64,000 nucleotides of DNA from Epithemia pelagica. Its lineage: Eukaryota > Protista > Bacillariophyta. The DNA lies in contig OX337241.1 of the NCBI GenBank assembly GCA_946965045.2, positions 1,798,001-1,862,000 on the forward strand, in the 5' to 3' direction. Both the position numbers and the translations under genes were made by a program. Below, one piece after another: positions 1,642 through 27,447 of this stretch. The number at the start of each line of letters is the position of its first letter. Position 1 is the stretch's first letter. The notes under the pieces are model-generated. The model did no database searches. It was not told where the DNA came from and saw only the letters and a program-made list of their open reading frames with translations.

Positions 1642-2208
1642 GGTTCATGGGTCCCGATGATCTATGGCAAATGAGTAGGGGTCGGTGTCGGTCAGTAACC
1701 GTTGGAGTAGAAGTCAGTAAACGTTGTCAGTCTGAATGTCTGTAGTGTCTGTCTATAGGCCTTTGGATCTTGCAGCCATCTTATTGGGAGCCATTGGGGG
1801 AGCAGAATGCAACTCTGCTTATCTGCCGAGGAGTATTGCCATGGGTGTGTTCAAGAAGAGGCTTAATAAATTGTTTGCTGTGGAGAGTCATTCTATTGCT
1901 CCAATTTTAAATGCTTTCGGTAGGGAGAAACCCACACATACGGCGTCTTGTCTCTCGTTTTCGGTTGATCGTACAAGGTCACCAACTCTATCAGGAAACG
2001 AACGACAACACAAGGCAAGTCCTCTCCAATCTACAAATCTGTGCTTTGGCAGACGTCCTGCGGGCAATAGAGATACGAAGCAGGTACCTGGGGACTGTGG
2101 AAGATCTTTGAAAAAAGAAAAGAAGAAACGTAGGGAAAATCACTGCTTGTGTGTTTGTTGTTGGTGTTTGTGCTAGTGGTGTCCTTTAGAGGAATAGAAA
2201 TTGTCAGG

Positions 2209-5200
2209 ATGAATCATCCGTCCGTATTGGCGGCGTCTAGCACGCCTCATCAGCAACCGCCCCAACCGGGTCAGTCCTCGGGAGGAGTGTTTCTCGACAT
2301 GGAGGAGGCCACCAAATTACAATTGGCGGAGGAAATCACACGGATTGAAGAAGAAATTGAACGTCAGCGTTTTGAAGAAGAAATTAAGCGCATGGAAGAT
2401 CAAATCCATGTCAATCACAAGTCACCAACCACCGCAACCACCAGTCCAGAGGCGACGGACGAGAGTGGAGCCGAAGAGGAAGATGTCACTGCAAGTTACG
2501 ATGCCTCCGAATCGCACTATGATTATGGCTACGAGGCAGGAGATTATTACGAAGAAGAAGAAGTCGTCATTGAGGATGACGATTACGACGAGGACGACAT
2601 GAGTTACGAAGAGGAAATTGTGGAAGAAATCGTTGAGGACGACCCGTACGGTGATGAGTATGAGGAATACTACGAAGAAGAAGAAATTATTGAAGAGTAC
2701 GATGATGAAGAGATTGTAGAATACGCCGTAGAAGAGGACGATTACGATGAGGGATACGAGGATTTTGGCGGTCATGAATCATACATGATGCAAGATGGCC
2801 AAGATTTCAATGCTTCTGCAGTTTGGAATACCGGGAATGAGGCCGATTTTCGTGGCAATGCCTTGCCGAGCCTCTTAGCACCAACCATGAGTACAGACGA
2901 ACCCGAACTGACAACACCTCCTCCCCGAAAAGGGCCTAGTTTTTTGGGCGACATTGCCTCCGCCGCATCCAAGCATAGTAGCAAGGCTACGGTCGTGGTG
3001 GCAAGTGGTCAGCAAGCACCGGCTCCACCTAAACCACAACCGGCCCGGGTGACACCACCCTCCTCCCCAGAAGACAATGCCCCTCGACCCATGCCCATGA
3101 AAGGAGGAAGTTTATTGGGTGACATTGCCTCGGCGGCCAATGCTCGTGCGGAACGACTGGGTGATGACAATGCCGAGTTGCGAATGAAAGAGGTGGTACC
3201 AGAAATTGAAGCTCCTGTACGACCCATGGATGCCTTTGATTTGACGGCAATGGTATCCAAAAAGGCACGGGAACGTGAGACACGGTTACAGGCTGGTGGA
3301 GAAAAGAAAATGACACCCATCAAGTCCAAAACGGAATATAAACAAGATTTCAAATCGATTGTGTTGGAGGCAGCACAATTGGGACGGCTAACACGTTTGA
3401 ACGAGCATGTCGTGGAAGCGGTGGCTCTGGAAAAGACGCAACAAGAAGAATGGCGATCCAAAGGTTTGCTCGCCATTCAGTGGAGAAATCAAGCCATGGC
3501 TGTCATTCATGAGGCAGCTCGAGCTGGACAGGCTTCCAAACTACCAGAAAAGATTGTTTCCAACTGTGCCGAAGAAGAGCAAGATCCTGAATACGACGAG
3601 CACAATGCCACGCAAAAGCGGATATCGGATCGAATGAAACAGTTATTGGAATTGTCGACAGAAGTAGGTACAGGCCAACACAAGGTTGATAGTCTCATCA
3701 TGGGACGAAAGGAAGAAAAGGCATTGGACGGTCGTGACAAGGTTGTACGGTCCATGGACTACTATGCGGATGCTCACGATGTCAAATTACCGCGCCGAAA
3801 GGCGCCAAAGATTGATCCGGCCAAGGAATATGAAAAAATCACGGCCAAGTTCAAAGGAACCTACCGTCAAGACAAACCTCTCAGCAATATCTCGAATGAA
3901 GTTGCAGAACGCGCGTGGTCTCGTCGAACACGTTTGGATCGACCGGGTTCCATGCCTCGCGTGACAGAGATTTGCAACTGTCCCTACTGTTTGGACCCAT
4001 CGCCCTATCAAACTCATGCCTATAAACAAAAGGATTTGGAACGGAAAGTGGAAGGATACGAAAGTCCTGATTCAGAGGAAGAACGTCAAAAAGCTCGACA
4101 GTTACGGCGCTTGGAACGACGCAAGAATCGTCCACAACGGGGAGCTCCCCGACCACCACCAGGTTCGGACACTATGGTATGCACCCTTGCATCGAGCACT
4201 CCTGTGCAGCACAACATTTCGGATGGTGGAGGACCTGTCTCGGTAGGAAACAGAGCTCGTTCGTACAATGGAACCGGAACTCCCTCTTTGCCACCCAACG
4301 CGATCGCACATTCGCGGGGCCCTCCGCGCCCCCGACCTGCTGGTGGAGATGAAACGAATCCCCGGACTCGCGCTCCAGGAGCCTCTCCAACTGGATCAGG
4401 AACAACAGTAGTCAAGCGACGAGTTCGCCCCCGCGGAGCTGCCCCCACGTCAGGAGGAGCTCCAGGAGGAGCACCTGGATCTCCTACAAATGGCAATGGA
4501 GTTGTACGCAGAAAGAGGGCCCCTGGTGCACCCGGGACCGCTCCTCGTCCTACGAGAGCCACAGGAACAGGAGGACCACCGTCACCGCGTCAAGGGACTG
4601 GCAAGATTGGCGTGGCGGCCCGTAGGCTTTCCACTGGAGCAGGTCCACAAAACAGCGCTGGTCCTCGTGTTGCGGGTCCTGGTGGTGAACCAGGTACCGC
4701 CGTTCCTGCTCCAGGAACGCGAAAGGTGGTTCGTCGTCGACGTAAAGTTGGAGTGGATCAAAATGGAAAAGGTCCGACGGAAGGTACAGCTTCACCGACG
4801 GCCGGCAAACCAGCGACCGGGGCGCCTGGAACCACCAAAGTCGTCACTCGCCGTCCGGCACGTGGTGCTCGTCCCGGTGCTCTGGGCAACGCCCAACGTG
4901 CCCCTGCCGCTCGACCGGTACAATCCTCTGCAAGTGGTGCCGCCCCGGCTCCCAACAAAGGAGGAACAGCACCACCTCCTCCCCCGCCGCCACCCCCGCC
5001 CGGTGCATCACCAGGAAAGGTTGTATCGACTCCCAATGGTGGACAAGTTTCCGAACAGGTGATCATACGACCCGACGGAACACGTGTGGTCCGTAAACTT
5101 GTGACCCCCACCATGACAACCAAAAAGTCAATAACGAAAAAAGTTGTGGTGCGATCTGGCAATGGCCGTAACAGAGTTGTTTCCAGTACAATTGTCAGCG

Positions 5201-12968: not shown

Positions 12969-15900
12969 TTACAACGACGAATCTTGTCGATACAGGACCA
13001 CGTGTACCATTTTGTCCGCCGCCTCTGTGGATCTCAAGGCATTTGTCGCAGTTGGTTCCGTTTCTCTGTACTCGGGAGCATGATCTATTAGAGTGTTGTT
13101 CCTGTCCAGTTCCACAGAGAGGGTCTCTTCCGTACCATTTGTGTCGTCGGGCAAGGATGAAGAGGACATCGAATGAAGCACGACTTCAATCCCTTGTGCC
13201 TCGTCTTGTCCACTCGACTCGTTCGCCATGGCATCGCGGATATGTTGGTCATTCATGGAATACAAGTCTTGTGCCAACGTAGTTTGCAAGTTTGTCACTT
13301 GACGTCTCGACGACAAGTCGGGTTGATCTACCAAGACTCGATGCGTGGATCCTATCGAGAAACTGGAGGCTGTTGATATCCGATTGGGGATTGGTATAAT
13401 ATGTGCAGTATCTTGCTTTCCCAAACCCGAGACGTCGTGCCCTCGTGTTTGACGACGGTCTTGTCGATCCACGTTTGAGTTCGAGCCCTGCTCAACAGAC
13501 GCAGCGCTTGATCGCACAGCAGCATACAGCTCTGGAGCAGATCTCACTCGTGGCAAATCGACGCCTCGTCTTGTATCCAACAGTCGTTCCCTACAGCCGC
13601 CATCCAAAAGGTTCGGTTCGACCAGATTTGTCCGTTCGGTCGGAGTAAGACTGGAACTTGTTCGCGTACTACTGTCATCTGCAACAAGGGATGGGTCTAC
13701 AATGTCATGTTCCTCAGCAACTTGGTCCTCCACTAACGTACCGGCCGTCATTAGTTTTCCTTGATAAAGAGTGGACGGGTCGTAATGAATCATTTCATAG
13801 CCGTAACGGAGAGATTTGCGACGACCACCACTACTTCCACCCTCCTCATAAGAGGAAAAGCGTCGCTCAAAAGATAGCACTGCCACTTGGGCATTTTCGT
13901 CAACTTCCAACGATGCCGAAGAATTCACTGAAACAGGAGTTTCGGCCAAAAGAGGAACCGGTTGATTCTGTTCGCTTGCTCCACTGTGGTCTTGGTTGTC
14001 ATGGTTTGTCATCGAGCAGCCTGAAGGAAGCATTTCGTATCCAACCTCTGCGGGTACAGAAGATCGAAGCGTTTCTAATCGTGCCAAATTCATGCACTGA
14101 CTTTTGCGAGAATGACTCCCCTTGCCGTCCCTAGTCTTGATGATGCGGTCCATGCATTCTTTTGTCTCCATCGCCCTGGCTTTTAAGATTGGGCGCTCTT
14201 TTTCAAATGCAATCGCACCTTGTTCGAACCGGGGAACCATGACACCAAACAATTGTTGACCGGGGACTGAAAAGTTGTCAACGGTAGAGGAGTCATTCTC
14301 GATGAAAGGCGAAGGACTGTCTCCAGAAGAAAATGAAACGGGCAATGGTCGGTCAAAGTGGCGACTCAAATTAAAATTGGGGACACGTGTACTGTAGTTT
14401 CCAAATAGCATGGACTTAACTTCCTCGTGTTTGGCGGTTTGTTGTGCTTTTAGCAATTCTCGTTTACTGAGTTGATTGAAGCGATCAAACGTATTCTGCA
14501 AGAAGAGTCGTCGCCTTTTCACTTGACCCGAGGAATCATTCTTGCCATTGCTTTGTGAATTAGGCAGATGAGGTTGCTGTGTTTTGTAGGCATCGACAAT
14601 CATCATATGAGGACCCAGGAGTCCCCAAACAAGAGCGCGCCCCACCCAGGTAAGAATCCAACCCCAGGGCAAGAACAGGGCAACAAAGCCTGAAAACAAA
14701 AAACAAACAGTGACCCAAAAGGATATCACACTTTCTTCCCATGTTACAATGATTTTGGCCAGGCGCATGTGTCTAAGATAGACGGCGATTCCCCCTTGCC
14801 AGACTCCCAGTCGGGCCAACCATTCCACAGGAATCAGCCGTTCTGCCAAATGATGGTGGTTAGTACTCGGAAGGGTTCCCGAATGAGCCTTGTGCGTATT
14901 ATCGGGATCTGAGGAGTTTCGTCCAATGCCATGCTTCAACTGTTGCAAAATGCGCACTCGCTCCAGGGCTTCTTCCGTATCTTGTTGATGTCGCTCCACG
15001 AGTTCTTGCCACTCGCGCTCCAAGGCTACGGTTTCACTGTGCCCTTCCCACGGTAAAATAGGTCGCTGCTGATCTCGCCATGACGATGATCGCACTGGGT
15101 CTTGATTGCCGCATAGCAAAATATACAAGTTTTGCCAGAAAGAGGGACAGCGATGCCACGGTGACGGATGGGATTGTCGCTGTGCTCCAGTGACCAACAA
15201 TATCCATCCAATGGACAAGAGGAAAAGGGCAGGAAACAATTGAGGACGTTCCACCAGCGTCGACGCCATTCCAAAAAATATGAGAGAATACAGTGGGACG
15301 TGGACACCTCCCCCGACGTGTACTTGGCCTCTCCAAAACACCAATGACCTCCAGGCCTGGCCTATGGAAAGCGTGGCGTGAAGTTTGTATTCTCGCAATT
15401 CGTTCAAGTACGATCGAATCACAGTCAAATCAAATTGCTGCTGCTCATCTTGTTCATCTCCGTATTGTCCAAAACAGGTATAACACAAGACTTGCAAACT
15501 GGCGTCTTTGTGCACATTGACATGAAAGGTGGGTCGCGGTTGAAGAAGGATGGCCCAGAGGGCAGCCTGCTCATTAGGAATTTCAACGCGGATCCGGATG
15601 GTCACGGTCCCATAGACGGTTTTGCGTTCCGTAACGTTGGAACTGGGGTGCCAATGATACTGTAAGGTATGATCGACGTTGCGTTGCAAGTTGCACAAAT
15701 TGACCGCGACTCGTCCAATGGCATCGTGCGGTTGATGCGGTTGTTGTGTTCCGCCCGCAGCTTGGAGTGTAGATAGAGGACTCGTGGAATCCCAGTCAAA
15801 ACATCCCAAATACAACATACTTGCCGGATGCAAAATACCAAAACAAAACGCTCGTTTCGTCCAAGGAAGCCAATGAGGACTAAGTTCATTGTCAATCACA

Positions 15901-17324
15901 TCGGTTTGGACCATGGCATCTTCCAACACGGCCGTGACAAAGGCATCCGTGACATCACCACCCACGGATTGTCCAGCCACGACGGCATCCAAATTGGGCA
16001 AGTCATGACAAGACAAGATTTCCAAGTATACCTTGCCCAAACTGGTTCGATCACGTCCAACAGTAGTGGACGAGGTGACACCTCCTGATCCAGCCTTAAT
16101 CCAATGGTGAGATGGTTTTTGTGTTTCTTCTTGGATTTGCTCCTTGGACAAAAATGTCGTGGTGGAAATATGTTTGGGGTCGGGATACGGTTTGACACGG
16201 TGTTTGATTTGCCCCGTGACTTCGTCTCGTACCGAGTTGGATTGAAAGGCCGACGACAAGGCATGAATCAAGGCCACCGGAGAGGATGAGGATCCTGCAC
16301 CAGAGAATCCTGTCGCAAGTTCTGTTTCATCTACCTCTGTCACCAAAAGACTGGGCCGCGTGGCTCGTTTGGATTGTTTGGTATGCAAGAGTGGTGGGGA
16401 TGGAGCGTGTTCTTGTCTAGGATGATTGAGTAAGGTCCACAATGTGGTTGGATCCATCTCACGTCTGGGAGTGGAATGGAACAGTTCGTCGAGACGATTC
16501 ACCACGACTTGATCCGACTTGCCGGCATGACGAAAACGCAATGTTACAGAGCCGCGAATTTTATCAGAAGCATGTCGACTCCGCAACAAGGATTGTAATG
16601 ATGATGCCTGGTATCGCCTGTGAACACTATTCTTGTTTTCGTTCTGTTCATCATCCTCACCATCAAGGTTTTTGTCCTCATCTGGATTGTTCCATTCATC
16701 AACCAAATCCACGGTGATGCGTTCTTCGTTGCATTTTTTCAAGACTGTGGATACAGGCACTCGCGCCTTTCCCAAAAATACATGGCCGTGTGGATGATTT
16801 GGTTCCTCTTTCTGTTTCTGTTGTTGTTTATTTTTGTCGTAACTCGAATGATGGGAAGATTTGGTCGTCCACACGGTAAGTTTCAGAAACGGTTTGCGTT
16901 GCAATTCTTCCAAGGTTGCGGAAAGGACAAAGAGAGAATGAGTGGAACAAGGTGTCCACAAGGGATTTCGTCCTCGATTCGTACAGGGTTCTGTTTGATG
17001 AATGACCTTGGATCCCCAAGAAACGGTGCAAAAGGGTTCCATGGCATTATGAGGATCTACGGCGTCTGCACTATCCTTCGGGCTATCACCACTGTTGTTG
17101 TCCGGTCCATCATTCTGGTTGGAATGAATCGAGGCTGAGGTTTCTTTTGGAGGGTGTAACCAGAGTCCATTGGCACCCACAATTTCTCCCAAGAGAGTGA
17201 CTTGTTCCTTCAAAAATTCCTCTTGTTCCAGAAAATTAGGTTGTGGCTTGGTACAGAGCGATTGGATGTTTGTCATAGCGAGAGTGCGTTTTCGCTTCGA
17301 GAACTGTGGGCCTGTGGAATCCAT
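12969..17324 (-). CDS. Multiple C2-domain and transmembrane protein (MCTP-like)
   Basis: C2-like segments PFCTVSWGSKVIHQT..NPLW and GKVYLEILSCHDLPNLD..TDAFV..QTDVIDNELSPHW..YLGCFDWD..IGRVAVNL. Hydrophobic hairpins near the C-terminal third. First ATG at 17324 (ORF track begins at GTG 17417). Confidence 0.85.
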   Translation of the reverse strand: MDSTGPQFSKRKRTLAMTNIQSLCTKPQPNFLEQEEFLKEQVTLLGEIVGANGLWLHPPKETSASIHSNQNDGPDNNSGDSPKDSADAVDPHNAMEPFCTVSWGSKVIHQTEPCTNRGRNPLWTPCSTHSLFVLSATLEELQRKPFLKLTVWTTKSSHHSSYDKNKQQQKQKEEPNHPHGHVFLGKARVPVSTVLKKCNEERITVDLVDEWNNPDEDKNLDGEDDEQNENKNSVHRRYQASSLQSLLRSRHASDKIRGSVTLRFRHAGKSDQVVVNRLDELFHSTPRREMDPTTLWTLLNHPRQEHAPSPPLLHTKQSKRATRPSLLVTEVDETELATGFSGAGSSSSPVALIHALSSAFQSNSVRDEVTGQIKHRVKPYPDPKHISTTTFLSKEQIQEETQKPSHHWIKAGSGGVTSSTTVGRDRTSLGKVYLEILSCHDLPNLDAVVAGQSVGGDVTDAFVTAVLEDAMVQTDVIDNELSPHWLPWTKRAFCFGILHPASMLYLGCFDWDSTSPLSTLQAAGGTQQPHQPHDAIGRVAVNLCNLQRNVDHTLQYHWHPSSNVTERKTVYGTVTIRIRVEIPNEQAALWAILLQPRPTFHVNVHKDASLQVLCYTCFGQYGDEQDEQQQFDLTVIRSYLNELREYKLHATLSIGQAWRSLVFWRGQVHVGGGVHVPLYSLIFFGMASTLVERPQLFPALFLLSIGWILLVTGAQRQSHPSPWHRCPSFWQNLYILLCGNQDPVRSSSWRDQQRPILPWEGHSETVALEREWQELVERHQQDTEEALERVRILQQLKHGIGRNSSDPDNTHKAHSGTLPSTNHHHLAERLIPVEWLARLGVWQGGIAVYLRHMRLAKIIVTWEESVISFWVTVCFLFSGFVALFLPWGWILTWVGRALVWGLLGPHMMIVDAYKTQQPHLPNSQSNGKNDSSGQVKRRRLFLQNTFDRFNQLSKRELLKAQQTAKHEEVKSMLFGNYSTRVPNFNLSRHFDRPLPVSFSSGDSPSPFIENDSSTVDNFSVPGQQLFGVMVPRFEQGAIAFEKERPILKARAMETKECMDRIIKTRDGKGSHSRKSQCMNLARLETLRSSVPAEVGYEMLPSGCSMTNHDNQDHSGASEQNQPVPLLAETPVSVNSSASLEVDENAQVAVLSFERRFSSYEEGGSSGGRRKSLRYGYEMIHYDPSTLYQGKLMTAGTLVEDQVAEEHDIVDPSLVADDSSTRTSSSLTPTERTNLVEPNLLDGGCRERLLDTRRGVDLPRVRSAPELYAAVRSSAASVEQGSNSNVDRQDRRQTRGHDVSGLGKQDTAHIIPIPNRISTASSFSIGSTHRVLVDQPDLSSRRQVTNLQTTLAQDLYSMNDQHIRDAMANESSGQDEAQGIEVVLHSMSSSSLPDDTNGTEETLSVELDRNNTLIDHAPEYRETEPTATNALRSTEAADKMVHVVLYRQDSSL

Positions 17325-21670: not shown

Positions 21671-22714
21671 ATGTGGATGCAATGCAACGGCAACGGCATT
21701 CCCAATTGCATACCGTTCAGAGTTGGAATCATCGGCGCGTTGTTTCTTTTTACTGCAGAAACTACGATTGCATTTGGCTTCCCTGCCGACTCGCACAACC
21801 CGAGTTACTGTGCGTCTCGCTGGACATTGTTGACTTCGTCGTCCCTGTCGCTTTCTCGGGCAGACGAGAAGAAAAATCTTCTCGCATTGTCGGCTAGTCC
21901 TGGGGCCATCAACGACCAAGCGGATACACCAAACACTATGGAGAACGGAATCGCTAAAAATGTGAAAAAGGGTATTATTTTCGATATTGACGGTACATTG
22001 GCAGACTCATGGCAATTAGGATTTGATGCGACCAATAAGGTATTACGGAATAACGATATTGAAACAATCTCAGAGGAAACGTATCACCAAGGAACGAAGT
22101 TCACGACGCCAAATCGGCTGGCTCGACATGCAGGCTTGGAACCCGCAGACGGCAGTTCATTCGAGACCATGGGGGAGAAACTGGCAAAGGAATTCGATGA
22201 ACTCTACATTGGATTGGTGTCAACGGAAACGGCAAGATTTTATCCTGGGATTGGAGATTTGTTGTTGCGTGTTCCCAGTGATATTGCCTTGGGGGTTTTG
22301 ACGAATGCTGCCGTGGATTATGCTCATGCGGTGCTGAAAGTGAACAGTATCCCACTGTCACCTTCTCCTGGTTCAGAGGACAAAATGCAGTTGTACCACC
22401 GGTTTCAATCGATTCGGGGAGCAGACAATGTTCCTCAAGCCAAACCAGAACCAGATGGATTGTGGACCGTATGTGATGACTTGGGTGTAGCTCCCAGCGA
22501 TTGTGTATACATTGGAGATTCTCCCAGTGATGGCAAAGCTGCACTCGCAGCAGGGATGTCGTTTGTGGGTGTATCATGGGGGAGTCATAGTCGAGAAGCC
22601 CTCTCCGGCATTGTTGATCCAGGAAACAAAAACGAAATCAATGATCCAATTAAGATTTGTGATACAGTGGAAGAACTGAATGAAGTTCTTGCAGGTTACT
22701 TGGTTGAGAGATGA
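21671..22714 (+). CDS. HAD-superfamily phosphatase (phosphoglycolate phosphatase-like), probably plastid-targeted
   Basis: Motif I IIFDIDGTLADS, motif II LGVLTN, motif III AKPEPD, motif IV YIGDSPSD. N-terminal signal peptide ending TIA-F. Confidence 0.9.
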   Translation: MWMQCNGNGIPNCIPFRVGIIGALFLFTAETTIAFGFPADSHNPSYCASRWTLLTSSSLSLSRADEKKNLLALSASPGAINDQADTPNTMENGIAKNVKKGIIFDIDGTLADSWQLGFDATNKVLRNNDIETISEETYHQGTKFTTPNRLARHAGLEPADGSSFETMGEKLAKEFDELYIGLVSTETARFYPGIGDLLLRVPSDIALGVLTNAAVDYAHAVLKVNSIPLSPSPGSEDKMQLYHRFQSIRGADNVPQAKPEPDGLWTVCDDLGVAPSDCVYIGDSPSDGKAALAAGMSFVGVSWGSHSREALSGIVDPGNKNEINDPIKICDTVEELNEVLAGYLVER

Positions 22715-22947
22715 ACTGAGCTTAGTAAGCCTTTTGTGGAGTCCCGAAAACCCGAAGCATTTCAAGATCAAGGGTTGACATTAGCTTTCTCCGTTGAATC
22801 ATTGGTAGCCTTCCCGAGAATATTGGCAACAAGTACTCCTGAACTGGACAGCTTTTCCTATTCATTTTCCAAGCTCTTGTTGTGGCATCTCGTCTCACCG
22901 CAAAAAGTCAAATATCAATGCATGTCTAATCTTAATATGTATGTATT

Positions 22948-25900
22948 CTAAACGACGCTCAGGATGGCAGAGATTCCCGCGTTCAGGATTCGCTCCTTGA
23001 CTATCTCTGCGTCTTTGTACGAATACGCATTCATGCCCTCGAGAGGGTAATCGACCTCGAGCATGGAGTACTTTTCACGCCCGAGTTCATGATACGGAAT
23101 AAGCTCGATTGTACGGAATGCTGTGCCCAATTCTTTGGCAAAAGCAACCAAAGCGTCCAATTCCGAGTCGGTATCAGTCATATCCTTGAGCAGAACCCAT
23201 CGCAGCGTCAACTTGATCGTTGGATAGTTGTCTCGAATGTAGCGAGCAAATTCCTTGGACTTCGCCATTTCGGCGGGAGACACTTGCGCAACTTTCGCGG
23301 CAACATCATTGTCCATACCTTTCATGCATAGTAAGACATGGTCGGTCACCGGAAGAACTTTGTCCCAGCGGCGCTTGTTTCCAAAACATGCGGTATCGAG
23401 GCAAGTTGTCAACCCTTTCGCATGGACACGCTCAAAAACGTCGCGGACAAAATCGGGTTGGAGCATGGCCTCTCCTCCAGAAAGCGTGATACCACCTCCT
23501 CTGGGCTTGAGCCAGTCTTTATACTTTCCGACCAACGAAGCAACCTCAGCGGACGACATCGCGAACTCGGGGTGTTCTTTGGGGTCAGCCATTGCTTGTG
23601 TCTCAGGATTGCAACAGAAGACGCACTTTTTGGGACATCCTTGCAAGAAGACGTTCGTACGGATTCCAGGACCATCTGTTGTTGAAAAAGTCTCGAGAGC
23701 GTAAACAGATCCCAATTTGGCACCCTCGTCGTCAACGCCTTCCATTTCCTCTGGATGGGTTTCTTTCTTTTCATCATTCGGGTCAAAAACGAGGCCTTTT
23801 CCGTATACGGCGGTGTCCTTTTTCTTTTGGGCCATGGTTGTTACATTTGTCGAATGCATCGTTCGCGCCATCACTTCCTCTCGTTGTTCGGGTGTCAGGC
23901 GATTGAAACGGACAGCATATCCACTGACACGGATTGTCAAGTTCGGATACTTCTCAGGATGTTCATGTGCATCAAGAAGAATGTCTCGACTAAGAACATT
24001 GATGTTAATGTGGTGGGCATTTCGGTTGAAGTATCCGTCGAGAATTGTGGCCAAATTCACCGGACGCTTGGTTTCTTGTCCCAATGCATTGGGAAGGAAG
24101 CAAAAGGTATTGGAAATACCATCCATGCATTTCGCGTAAGGAAGTTTGGCGACTGAAGACAAAGACGCTAGAGCTCCGTTCTTGTCACGTCCATGCATGG
24201 GGTTCGCACCAGGAGCAAATGCCTCTCCAAAGACACGTCCGTCAGGTGTGGCTCCCGTTGCTTTGCCGTACACCAAATTGGAAGTAATTGTTAGGATGGA
24301 CAGGGTGGCCTTGGCATTTTTGTACAGCGGATGTTTGTCAAGTTCCTCGTGGAATCTGGAGCACACCTTGACGGCGATCGAATCCACACGATCGTCGTCG
24401 TTTCCAAATTGAGGAATTTCTCGGTTGGGGTGACCACGGCGGAAACTGGTGGTCAAGCCATTCTCATCACGGATTGGGTATATGTCATCATACTTCAAAG
24501 CAGCAAGAGAGTCTGCGACCACACTGAGACCTGCAGCCCCGAAAGCCATCAGTCGATTGACATTCGAGTTGTGGAGAGCCATTTGGATGTTTTCGTAGTT
24601 GGTGCAATCATGGGAATAGTGGATGCAGTTCATTGTTTCCGCGTAGAGTTTGGCCATCCAAGGAATGGCAATATCAAAATACAAGCGCTCGACATCCTCG
24701 AAGTTGATGGGTTTGTTTTCGTCACCAGCACCAATGCCAAGCTTTTCGCATTCTTCGCCAAGTGCCGGGCATAGTTTCTCGCCGTGTATTTCATCTCGTC
24801 CTCCGTTGAGGCACATCAGAAGTAACTTAACCATTTTAGTGCGAGCTCCAAAAAACTGCATGTCCACTCCAACCCTCATGCCGGACACACAACAGGCGAT
24901 GGCATAATCGCTTCCAAAAATTGACCGCATGAGGTCATCGTTCTCGTACTGAATTGAGGACGATTCAATCGATTGCTGAGCGCAATAAACCTTGAAATTG
25001 TCGGGGAGATTTTGTGACCAAAGCACCATCAGGTTTGGCTCTGGGGCAGGACCCTGGTTCGTCAATGTGTGCAGGAAACGGAAGGTGGTTTTGGTCACCA
25101 TGCTCTTGCCCTCTTCTGTGCATCCCCCAAGGGCAATCGTCAACCACGTAGGGTCTCTGGAGAAGAGTGCGTTGTAGGCGGGGGGTCGAAGATGACGAAC
25201 AAGACGCATCTTGATCACAACGTCGTCAATTACTTCTTGAAGGTCTATTTCCGTGGATGTTCCTTCTGCGAGCTCTCGTTCAGCATAGATATCAAGGAAC
25301 GCATCCCACCGTCCAACGGACATGGCAGCCCCGTCTTGTTCCTTAAGGGCAGCAGTGTGACCCAGCCACATGGCTTGCACTGCTTCTTGGAAGGTCTTTG
25401 CTGGTAGACGAAGGTCCACACCATAGCTGTCACCCATTTCTGCCAACTCTTTAAGACCTTTAATTTGTTTTGAAATTTCGGCTCGAAGTTGCATGTTCTC
25501 AACGGAGGCACCGGGAACTGCTGCATAGTCGGCTTTCTTTCTCCGAATGAGCTCATCAACACCATACAGAGCAAGGCGTCGATAATCTCCAATGATTCTA
25601 CCGCGACCGTAGGCATCCGGCAGACCTGTAAGCAAGTGCGCATGTCGAGCTGCACGCATCTCTTTGGTGTACATGCTGAAAATCATGTCATTGTGTGTTT
25701 GGACATCCTGTAGTCGAAGAAACGTTTGTGAGGGAAAGCGAAGCAATTAAATCAAAGGCTAATTCAGCACAACCATACGTACCTCAGTGTAGGTTTTCTT
25801 CATTTCTTCGTCAGGAGTAAAACCGTAGCTCTCGAGTGCCTTTCGCACGACATTGAAGCCCCCACGAGGCTTGCATGAACGCTTCAAAGGTTCATCGGTT

Positions 25901-26334
25901 TGGAGGCCACAGACAACGTCTTCTTCGGGAGAGAGAACGTAGCCCGGCCCATGACTTGTAATTGTGGAAGGCGTCTTTGTATCAACGTCCAAGATACCAC
26001 GTTGACGCTCCAATTCCATTAGTTCTTCGCAACGCTTCCAACTCTTGAGTGTTCTTTCGGTCGGTCCTTCCAAAAAGGACAAATCTCCGCGGTACGGAGT
26101 CACATGTTCCAGAACGTAGTCCTTGACTGAGCAATCACCAGGAAGTGGAGCAGGTGTTACGACCGAAGGGAGGTCATGGATTTGCGAAAGTTTCGACTCC
26201 AACTCATCGCATGAACTCCGAAAAGATGGGAAAGAAGCATGGTTGGATCTCAAATGATGCTTCAACTGCTTCTCTCGAGGCTCCTCCGAATAGGAAATCT
26301 TGATAGTTACTTTGGGACGCACCGGGCGGAACAT
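22948..26334 (-). CDS. pflB-pflA: Pyruvate formate-lyase fused in frame to PFL-activating enzyme (radical SAM); complement(join(22948..25707,25783..26334)), about 1103 aa
   Basis: Intron 25708..25782 (GTACGT..CTACAG) joins KKTYTE/DVQTHND. PFL motifs [17 protein letters not shown], catalytic IACCVS (24889-24894) and glycyl-radical RVSGYAV (Gly codon 23920-23922). A 47-aa linker (23713-23853) leads to the activase [21 protein letters not shown] (CxxxCxxC 23614-23637), SGGEA, DT and ELIPYHELG motifs. Confidence 0.96.
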
Positions 26335-27447
26335 TGTTGTTGCTTTCGGTGTTTTGTTGTTGTTGTTGTTGTTGTTGATGTGTTTTCGTTTCAATGAATT
26401 GAATGTTTCAGTTCAGGGATGATTTGATTTTGTGAGACCATGAAGAATGGCGAAAAATCATTCCTTTTCCAATCAACCTATTCGTGATTCGCTTTTTGAC
26501 ACCAGAATTCGGGCTTTGGGAAATCGACCAAATGCGAAGCTGTACTTTTTGGGCCACAGTTGTGCGATTCGGGTTGGGATCGAGATATGCCAGTTCCAAA
26601 CGCACATGCCGAATGCCGACATATTCCATGAGAATTCGACAGTATTCTCGACGGACCTATCAGTTGGGTCATTCTGGACGGTGGTTTCTCGTCTTGCTAT
26701 ATCTCGGAGGCGAGAACAGAACTCATCATGGAAGACTCCGATGGGCTCACAATGCATTCAGCAAGAGAGCCCATAGCCCATTGGCAAAGATTAGAAAATA
26801 GAAGAAGGTGAAGTTGGTTCTGAGATTCTTGATGCGGTGAGGGGACTCGAGACAGTCGAGAATCTCGCGTGTCAAGAGACGACCACCTAATTCATCCGCA
26901 ATATAAAATCAGTGCTTCGACTTCGGCTGGTACTTCGTAGTATGTTATCATTCCGTTCGCCTCCCCTTGCTCCATGTCGATAAGGAGGACAACGACGACA
27001 GTAAGCTTGACTCTTCCAATTGCAATGGGAAAGCGGCATCGTTGAATTCAAATGCATCATCAGTTGGCATTCTAAGACATTCTCGTCCCCTTTCCCTGAC
27101 TTTTCGGGCAACGGGCACCCCAATAGAGTTATTAGCAAGCAGACCGAAACTTGTTTCGTTCCTCTCCGATAAACGTTTACGATTATACAGTCACAACGAC
27201 ACTAGATACAGACGAGGTATGCCCATTTCTGGGTCTTCAATGCTTCTAGCAATTCAGTCATTCGTCTTCAAATGGTTCCACACATTGGGAGGCACGTCAA
27301 GCTCACAAAGCTCAATGCCATATATGGCTCCATTTAAAATCAGTTGTTGCTAGCCTGATGTGAGAAAAATGTTGAAACATTTTGCTCTATGATCATGTGT
27401 TTCGATGTCCTTTATGGTTCCCTAGACTGTAGAGATGGGCTTTGCGA

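Follow-up and report, generated by a model that had tools for sequence, protein, structure and literature searches.

The diatom Epithemia pelagica carries, in a 64,000-nt stretch of its DNA (the window, to whose positions all coordinates refer), a minus-strand gene that joins pyruvate formate-lyase (PFL) and its activase, a radical S-adenosylmethionine (SAM) enzyme, in one reading frame. With a probability of about 0.8, it is a nuclear diatom gene whose product combines both functions of a glycyl radical system in a single chain. PFL, an oxygen-sensitive enzyme of fermentation, converts pyruvate and coenzyme A (CoA) into formate and acetyl-CoA. With the help of a [4Fe-4S] cluster and SAM, the PFL-activating enzyme abstracts a hydrogen from the glycine of PFL. 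The two enzymes form a textbook two-protein system, the activation step of which is still debated structurally.

Gene model and expression

The coding region extends from a start ATG at 26334-26332 to a stop at 22950-22948 and is interrupted by a single intron (Table 1). The raw list of open reading frames (ORFs) shows it as two minus-strand frames, one of 932 codons (22948-25746) and one of 211 codons (25759-26394), the upstream one terminating at a stop eight codons past the GT at 25782. This donor GT (25782-25781) lies immediately 3' of the exon end ...TACACTGAG, and the acceptor AG (25709-25708) immediately 5' of GATGTCC. Once the 75 nt are removed, the 184 codons of exon 1 and the 919 of exon 2 form a frame of 1,103 residues in which the sole stop is the terminal one; without splicing, the frame terminates at residue 191.

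Matches to the region 22700-26650 are present in four sequencing runs (X1, X2, X3, and X5), of which three (X2, X3, and X5) come from the same organism. Runs X2 and X3 are DNA runs and contain the unspliced locus, including intergenic DNA. Run X5 is RNA-like, with zero depth upstream of 26396 and coverage of all bins from 22964 to 26395. A 937-nt contig of this run skips exactly 75 nt at 25707/8-25781/2, the borders reading CT..AC on the plus strand and GT..AG on the gene strand. This skip is the only joint that X5 contigs report across the fusion gene, hence nothing is spliced out of the linker in these contigs, which, being assembled, may miss rare transcript forms. The presence of both domains on one mRNA in E. 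pelagica is well supported but not proven.

Relatives share this gene structure. The protein of Epithemia clementina (P0003, 1,104 residues) has its start codon at the same place, opens with an identical MFRPVRPKV, and carries the same residues across the splice junction, read as ...YTEDVQTHND.... On a 1.15-Mb contig of a related diatom (L001), the gene is split in the same manner into ORFs of 194 and 909 codons by an intron at the same codon, the exon flanks being conserved and the intron interior diverged. The gene is thus a real, spliced, and expressed nuclear diatom gene, and its closest named relative is that of E. clementina. The 75-nt GT-AG intron had been proposed in a preliminary description of this DNA, and both the sequence and the X5 contig bear it out. 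Within 23713-23853, where that description had looked to a stop or a splicing event as grounds for rejecting the fusion, none is seen in the frame or in the X5 contigs.

The two enzyme halves

The part of PFL encoded by exon 2 aligns with Escherichia coli PflB (PDB ID: 1h16) over chain residues 142-755 with an E-value of 1.9e-198. The conserved blocks surround Arg176, Cys418-Cys419, Arg435, and Gly734 (E. coli residue numbers, counted from the printed 1h16 alignment) and include the MQFFGAR block and another of 20 residues; a 13-residue stretch holding RVSGY is identical to that of E. coli PflB. The Pfam profile PF02901 (PFL-like, gathering cut-off 24.3) scores 487.7 bits on exon 2 (8e-146) and 56.9 bits on exon 1 (2e-15), while PF01228 (Gly_radical) reaches 120.1 bits on the exon-2 ORF for a cut-off of 22.2 (8e-35). 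Among NCBIfam families, TIGR01255 ranks best for this half, the runner-up scoring 209 bits. Judged by these alignments and profiles, residues 64-802 are a genuine pyruvate formate-lyase.

The C-terminal 255 residues match E. coli PflA (PDB ID: 3c8f) with an E-value of 3.6e-39, over residues 3-233 of the 245-residue chain. PF04055 (Radical_SAM) is found at 45.9 bits for a cut-off of 29.5 (9e-12) and PF13353 (Fer4_12) at 42.1 bits for a cut-off of 22. Besides the motifs listed in Table 1, the PYHELG sequence of E. coli PflA is retained at residues 1055-1060. Activases of other glycyl radical enzymes are marked by a ferredoxin-like insert with two clusters; in the Pfam scan, no Fer4-type domain besides Fer4_12 is detected. 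Furthermore, TIGR02493 (PFLA), which matches in one stretch with 190 bits, ranks above TIGR02494 (PFLE_PFLC), which matches in two stretches with 165 bits. Motif content and family ranking identify residues 850-1103 as a genuine PFL-activating enzyme.

When 45 fused homologues are aligned, the Cys-Cys pair, the pyruvate-binding arginines, RVSGY, the D, G, P, and R of DGPGIR, the CX3CX2C motif, and GGE prove invariant. As catalytic and cofactor-binding residues are maintained throughout, it can be argued that both halves are under selection for catalysis. The preliminary description had recognized an intact PFL and a complete PFL-activase in one frame. This is confirmed by the Pfam matches, the 1h16 and 3c8f alignments, and the single terminal stop, and the motifs it listed (Cys-Cys, RVSGY, CxxxCxxC, GGE, and PYHELG) are all present.

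The linker

Between the two enzymes lies a charged linker, which had been delineated beforehand as 47 residues at 23713-23853 and is recovered exactly as such, with 11 acidic and 7 basic residues. Linker length in the 45 fusions ranges from 27 to 80 residues (median 41), and the sequences are mostly acidic and poorly conserved. Their sole shared feature is a short acidic-hydrophobic patch, which reads EEMEGV in pennate diatoms and is DIEDL-like or SVDLAL elsewhere. The spacing between the glycine motif and CX3CX2C amounts to 98 residues in the window gene, within a family range of 72-191. An AlphaFold2 model was calculated for the full-length E. clementina orthologue, with the alignment of the fusions as input. 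It has a predicted template modelling score (pTM) of 0.83 and a mean predicted local distance difference test score (pLDDT) of 78. The pLDDT drops below 50 at residues 1-48, in the N-terminal extension, and at residues 805-835, in the linker, and confidence recovers from the EEMEGV patch onward. The linker is accordingly modelled as a flexible, disordered tether, and its acidic-hydrophobic patch may be a docking element.

Table 1. Position of the fusion gene and its parts in the E. pelagica window
Feature	Position	Strand	Remarks
PFL-activase fusion gene, whole coding region	22948..26334	-	two exons, one intron; 1,103 codons + stop
Exon 1	25783..26334	-	184 codons: N-terminal extension and first part of PFL domain; Pfam PFL-like 2e-15; TIGR01255 profile positions 13-129
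Intron	25708..25782	-	75 nt, GT..AG (GTACGT...CTACAG); from sequence, RNA-like contig, and relative's intron at the same position
Exon 2	22948..25707	-	919 codons + stop: remaining PFL, glycyl radical domain, linker, activase
N-terminal extension ahead of PFL fold	26146..26334	-	residues 1-63; no hydrophobic signal peptide; predicted disordered
Conserved N-terminal motif, candidate regulatory short linear motif	26221..26253	-	residues 28-38 (11 residues); alignment A2, 14 diatom fusions
Pyruvate formate-lyase proper	23854..26145	-	residues 64-802, split by the intron; glycyl radical domain at its C-terminus; 1h16, Pfam, TIGR01255
Catalytic Cys456-Cys457 (E. coli Cys418-Cys419)	24889..24894	-	1h16 alignment; invariant in 45 fusions
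RVSGY glycyl radical motif	23917..23931	-	residues 777-781; Gly780 at 23920-23922 (E. coli Gly734); invariant in 45 fusions
Charged linker	23713..23853	-	residues 803-849, 47 residues, 11 acidic + 7 basic
EEMEGV motif in linker	23734..23751	-	linkers of 45 fusions compared
PFL-activating enzyme domain, radical SAM	22951..23712	-	residues 850-1103; 3c8f, Pfam Radical_SAM + Fer4_12, TIGR02493
DGPGIR motif of glycyl-radical activases	23659..23676	-	residues 862-867; identical to E. coli PflA; D, G, P, R invariant in 45 fusions
CX3CX2C [4Fe-4S] motif CPKKCVFC	23614..23637	-	residues 875-882 (Cys875, Cys879, Cys882); three Cys invariant in 45 fusions
GGE S-adenosylmethionine-binding motif	23470..23478	-	residues 928-930; same in E. 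coli PflA; invariant in 45 fusions

Distribution of the fusion

The distribution was searched with the activase region as query and a length window fitted to the entire protein, which restricted the matches to long proteins. The search yields 91 protein clusters that combine PF02901, PF01228, and PF04055. Named carriers include the diatoms E. clementina, Fistulifera solaris (two copies, e.g., GAX28273.1), Seminavis robusta, Cyclostephanos tholiformis, Cyclotella atomus, Thalassiosira profunda, another Thalassiosira, and Conticribra weissflogii, as well as the haptophyte Prymnesium parvum (KAL1522014.1) and the chromerid Chromera velia (A0A0G4FZB3). Across search matches and cluster members, 120 of 142 proteins show the glycine motif followed 72-191 residues later by CX3CX2C. 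Several fusions are complete ORFs on assembled MMETSP transcripts, which proves the fusion at the transcript level in other species. The PFL-activase architecture is thus already in public proteomes, usually under the name "formate C-acetyltransferase", and the caution expressed in the preliminary description that its novelty needed checking was well placed.

The fused proteins of diatoms, P. parvum, and C. velia are identical to the window protein in architecture and domain order, differing only in the length and sequence of the linker, in intron content, and at the N-terminus. The closest of them, that of E. clementina, shares 84% identity with the window protein over exon 2. The Prymnesium fusion lacks an N-terminal extension, and paralogues in Thalassiosirales possess a signal peptide and an A|F site (see below). 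In the relatives P0094, P0096, and P0098-P0100, the called ORF ends right after GCPKKC, which points to a second intron inside the CX3CX2C motif of these genes, an intron that the window gene does not have. A PFL-activase fusion is also recorded in EukProt for the kleptoplastidic foraminifer Nonionella stella (P0400, 840 residues), and is placed by the tree inside the diatom plastid-type group. Expression of PFL has been reported for this foraminifer (PMC11736642); in view of the placement of P0400, it might stem from diatom prey or a kleptoplast source.

Evolutionary history

Separate trees were built for the two halves. The window gene is sister to E. clementina in both (Shimodaira-Hasegawa-like approximate likelihood ratio test, SH-aLRT, of 97 on the PFL half and 97-98 over the two) and belongs in each to a group of 12 rows with a support of 98-99. 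The PFL-half tree resolves six groups. Five of these correspond to one side of a branch in the activase-half tree, and the sixth is not rejected there (approximately unbiased test, p 0.41). Recovery of the PFL-half groups on the activase half indicates that the two halves have travelled together as one unit. When the PFL tree is rooted on clostridial sequences, all fused proteins fall in one clade with an SH-aLRT of 100 and a long stem; in this tree, unfused eukaryotic PFLs (Chlamydomonas, fungi, amoebae) are thinly sampled. The search for unfused PFLs returned mostly bacterial matches. Mapping the fusion and building a tree for each half had been put forward at the outset, and the outcome is a widespread fusion, congruent half-trees, and a single clade of fused proteins.

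The nearest unfused PFLs are clostridial, with 55-60% identity. The title of Stairs et al. 2011 names a firmicute origin, which agrees with these clostridial neighbours. Free-standing activases close to the window domain were also sought. Almost all matches above 45% identity start at an internal Met after RTMH or carry a glycyl radical domain, and for this reason they are regarded as fragments of fusions. The two proteins that come closest to a stand-alone activase, P0172 and P0177, are encoded immediately 3' of PFL pieces, in the same orientation, and were likewise rejected.

The N-terminal extension and targeting

The extension of the window protein has a 16-residue basic start followed by three acidic residues. 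Its maximum Kyte-Doolittle hydropathy is 0.33, versus 1.25-2.2 in the Thalassiosirales paralogues that have a signal peptide. The lack of a hydrophobic stretch makes location in the diatom plastid unlikely and, in the absence of a signal peptide, the protein is most likely cytosolic. The preliminary description had suggested that the R/S-rich N-terminus may target the protein to mitochondria. The acidic turn after residue 16, the predicted disorder, and a motif conserved across diatoms speak against this suggestion. Mitochondrial targeting by the N-terminus is not supported, and a mitochondrial location is less likely than a cytosolic one.

This motif follows the pattern LR-S/T-N/Q-H-G/A-S-F-P-S/T-F (consensus LRxNHGSFPTFR) and is kept in 12 of 14 diatom fusions, pennate and centric. 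The remaining two, P0038 and P0041, retain only the Arg, so that Arg29 is invariant. Such conservation is more in keeping with a regulatory short linear motif than with a mitochondrial presequence. With a Ser followed by x-Pro and an upstream Arg, the motif resembles a phosphorylation or 14-3-3-type site.

Fused PFL-activases of a separate Thalassiosirales clade, comprising P0121 (C. weissflogii), P0081 (C. atomus), P0079 (T. profunda), P0066, and P0057, display a hydrophobic, signal-peptide-like start followed by an A|F site (e.g., SSIA|FVRTP), which is the plastid-import pattern of diatoms. Diatoms may therefore possess a plastid-targeted paralogue besides the non-plastid one.

Surroundings of the gene and further matches

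A gene for a HAD-family hydrolase (21671-22714, plus strand) converges on the 3' end of the fusion gene, and one is likewise found on L001 (9309-10724); local synteny is thus conserved. A 1,430-nt X5 contig runs from 23113 through 22700 and further toward this neighbour, from which it follows that the 3' ends of the two genes may overlap. Just 5' of the start codon, an (AAC)n microsatellite (26345-26391) is likely part of the 5' untranslated region; as a repeat, it was left out of read matching. At 24964, 13 nt are missing from one DNA contig of run X3, 29 nt before the contig ends; an end artefact or a broken second allele is the probable cause.

Two 151-nt contigs of run X1, a metatranscriptome labelled "subsurface metagenome", match the PFL part at 24574-24938 with 0 and 2 differences. 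Such matches hint at the fusion gene, or one nearly identical to it, in an environmental RNA library, but are too little to name a habitat.

Proposed mechanism and alternative explanations

Self-activation of PFL by the fused activase is plausible. The mature protein would stay in one piece and, under anoxia, reduced flavodoxin or ferredoxin would serve as electron donor for the activase domain. This domain would then install the radical on Gly780 of its own chain or of the partner in the PFL dimer. The tether begins ~22 residues past Gly780, and its length would allow the activase to get to the flipped-out glycine loop. A single gene would hence provide both activities in one compartment, with activase and PFL at 1:1. 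Activated E. coli PFL is cleaved by O2 at the radical glycine; on this ground, O2 damage to the fusion is predicted to cut the chain between the PFL body and a piece made of tail, linker, and activase. That the fusion enzyme would be suited to anoxic sediment is a reasonable inference. E. coli PFL with a C-terminal fusion partner has been shown to still acquire the glycyl radical (PMC8872734).

A far-reaching version of this mechanism would make the protein an obligately self-contained machine. Gly780 would be activated at 1:1 in cis or within the dimer, the N-terminal motif would act as a phosphorylation or binding switch gating activation, O2 damage would split the chain at the radical glycine, setting the activase free, and red-plastid algae would have retained this design over hundreds of millions of years. 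This version as a whole is rather unlikely.

Several points weigh against a functional single-chain system in E. pelagica. Both halves score below the equivalog cut-offs of their families, TIGR01255 giving 812.8 + 101.2 bits, scored in two pieces, versus a cut-off of 994.2 set on bacteria, and TIGR02493 giving 190.2 bits versus 231.75, calibrated on bacterial proteins; the latter is still the best NCBIfam family for the activase. The RNA support consists of short assembled contigs from a single run of unrecorded library type, and none of them spans PFL, linker, and activase. The searchable literature holds no activity or electron paramagnetic resonance (EPR) data for any natural PFL-activase fusion. 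Finally, the P0275 cluster (MMETSP transcripts, 776-778 residues) and P0279 (786 residues) are unfused PFLs that end 33-38 residues past the glycine motif, and they branch within the fused clade, beside P0067, a fused protein. Some relatives can therefore do without the fusion, and the simplest reading of the tree would be one fusion followed by at least one fission.

These unfused PFLs, which imply that the two enzymes work apart in close relatives, also lend some weight to the best of the alternatives. According to it, the fused chain is a polyprotein precursor in which a protease cuts the linker to give separate PFL and activase, the fusion ensuring only co-expression and co-targeting. The linker is disordered and variable in length (27-80 residues) and sequence, as would be a cleavable spacer, but the short acidic-hydrophobic patch is all that the 45 linkers conserve, and no cleavage motif is found among them. 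Moreover, cleavage of the linker is not required, since E. coli PFL is functional with a bulky C-terminal fusion (PMC8872734). Processing of this kind is considered improbable.

Still less credence is given to the production of two proteins, in which an internal promoter or an alternative transcript would also, or mainly, yield free activase and the long read-through transcript would be minor. The summed depth of X5 contigs is indeed higher in the 3' part of the gene (~8,700-36,000) than in the 5' part (~2,000-3,000). However, contig depth is a poor measure, and it falls gradually, remaining elevated over several hundred bases upstream of the linker (14,000-16,600 at 23888-24151), with no step at the domain border. 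The frame is open across the linker in 45 fusions, a selection that separate products would not need, and complete MMETSP transcripts of other species bear the whole fusion. This explanation is thus very improbable.

A bacterial contaminant or a mis-assembly joining a pflB-pflA operon, to which the clostridial nature of the nearest unfused PFLs (55-60% identity) and the adjacent, equally ordered pflB and pflA of the E. coli textbook operon could point, is refuted for practical purposes by the spliceosomal intron removed in RNA, the same intron position and convergent HAD-hydrolase neighbour on the 1.15-Mb contig of a related diatom, the 84% identity to a diatom orthologue as against 55-60% to bacteria, and the presence of the locus in three independent runs of the organism.

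Prior literature and significance

Stairs, Roger & Hampl 2011 (Mol Biol Evol 28:2087) and Atteia et al. 2013 (BBA 1827:210) reportedly mention a fusion in Thalassiosira pseudonana, an unverified lead. The full-text literature that was searched, which excluded these two papers, contains no description or characterization of a natural PFL-activase fusion. A 2021 review with a table marking other algal gene fusions does not mark this one, and a 2026 preprint on the Thalassiosira anoxia proteome discusses PFL and never mentions the activase. The architecture thus seems under-appreciated, though present in public proteomes. The window gene itself is an orthologue of an existing fused family, and would come as no surprise to specialists in the anaerobic metabolism of eukaryotes.

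A natural, covalent PFL-activase pair constitutes a ready-made stoichiometric complex for structural and EPR work on the activation step. The fusion is also a one-gene module for engineering formate production or assimilation, and it bears on the survival of diatoms in dark anoxia.

Comparison with known systems

Fusions of comparable content occur in prokaryotes. A "pyruvate formate lyase family protein" of Smithella sp. (~1,100 residues) and a protein from a Promethearchaeota metagenome-assembled genome (MAG) combine a PFL-like barrel, a glycyl radical domain, and a radical-SAM activase in one chain, with an activase identity to the window gene of only 23-30%. In P0095, P0097, P0101-P0103, P0105, and P0107 (Smithella and other MAGs), the activase comes first and the glycine motif lies near residue 1,075, while P0104 and P0106 have the domain order of the eukaryotic fusions. 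The mostly reversed order implies a separate origin, and the prokaryotic proteins are best classified, from their sequences, as independent fusions from other glycyl radical enzyme subfamilies.

In Chlamydomonas reinhardtii, HydEF is an algal fusion that contains a radical-SAM maturase of an oxygen-sensitive anaerobic enzyme (PMC8003979). It offers an analogy only, as it joins a maturase to a maturase and not to its substrate enzyme, and homology is limited to the radical-SAM fold. Closer in chemistry are PFL1 and PFLA of the same alga, the eukaryotic PFL system of dark anoxic fermentation (PMC8003979, PMC3660698). They are separate proteins from separate nuclear genes, PFL1 being dually targeted and PFLA predicted as plastidial, whereas the window protein is fused and has no recognizable targeting signal.

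The halves of the window protein align nearly end to end with E. coli PflB (PDB ID: 1h16, 2pfl) and PflA (PDB ID: 3c8f, 3cb8). The Cys-Cys pair, RVSGY, the pyruvate-binding arginines (Arg176 and Arg435), DGPGIR, CX3CX2C, and GGE are all kept as in the bacterial enzymes. The adjacent E. coli genes follow the order pflB-pflA, the same as that of PFL and activase in the fusion. In E. coli, however, the two are separate proteins and the activase acts catalytically at low abundance, whereas the window gene places both in one chain at 1:1 and, unlike its bacterial counterparts, possesses a 47-residue tether, a 63-residue N-terminal extension, and an intron.

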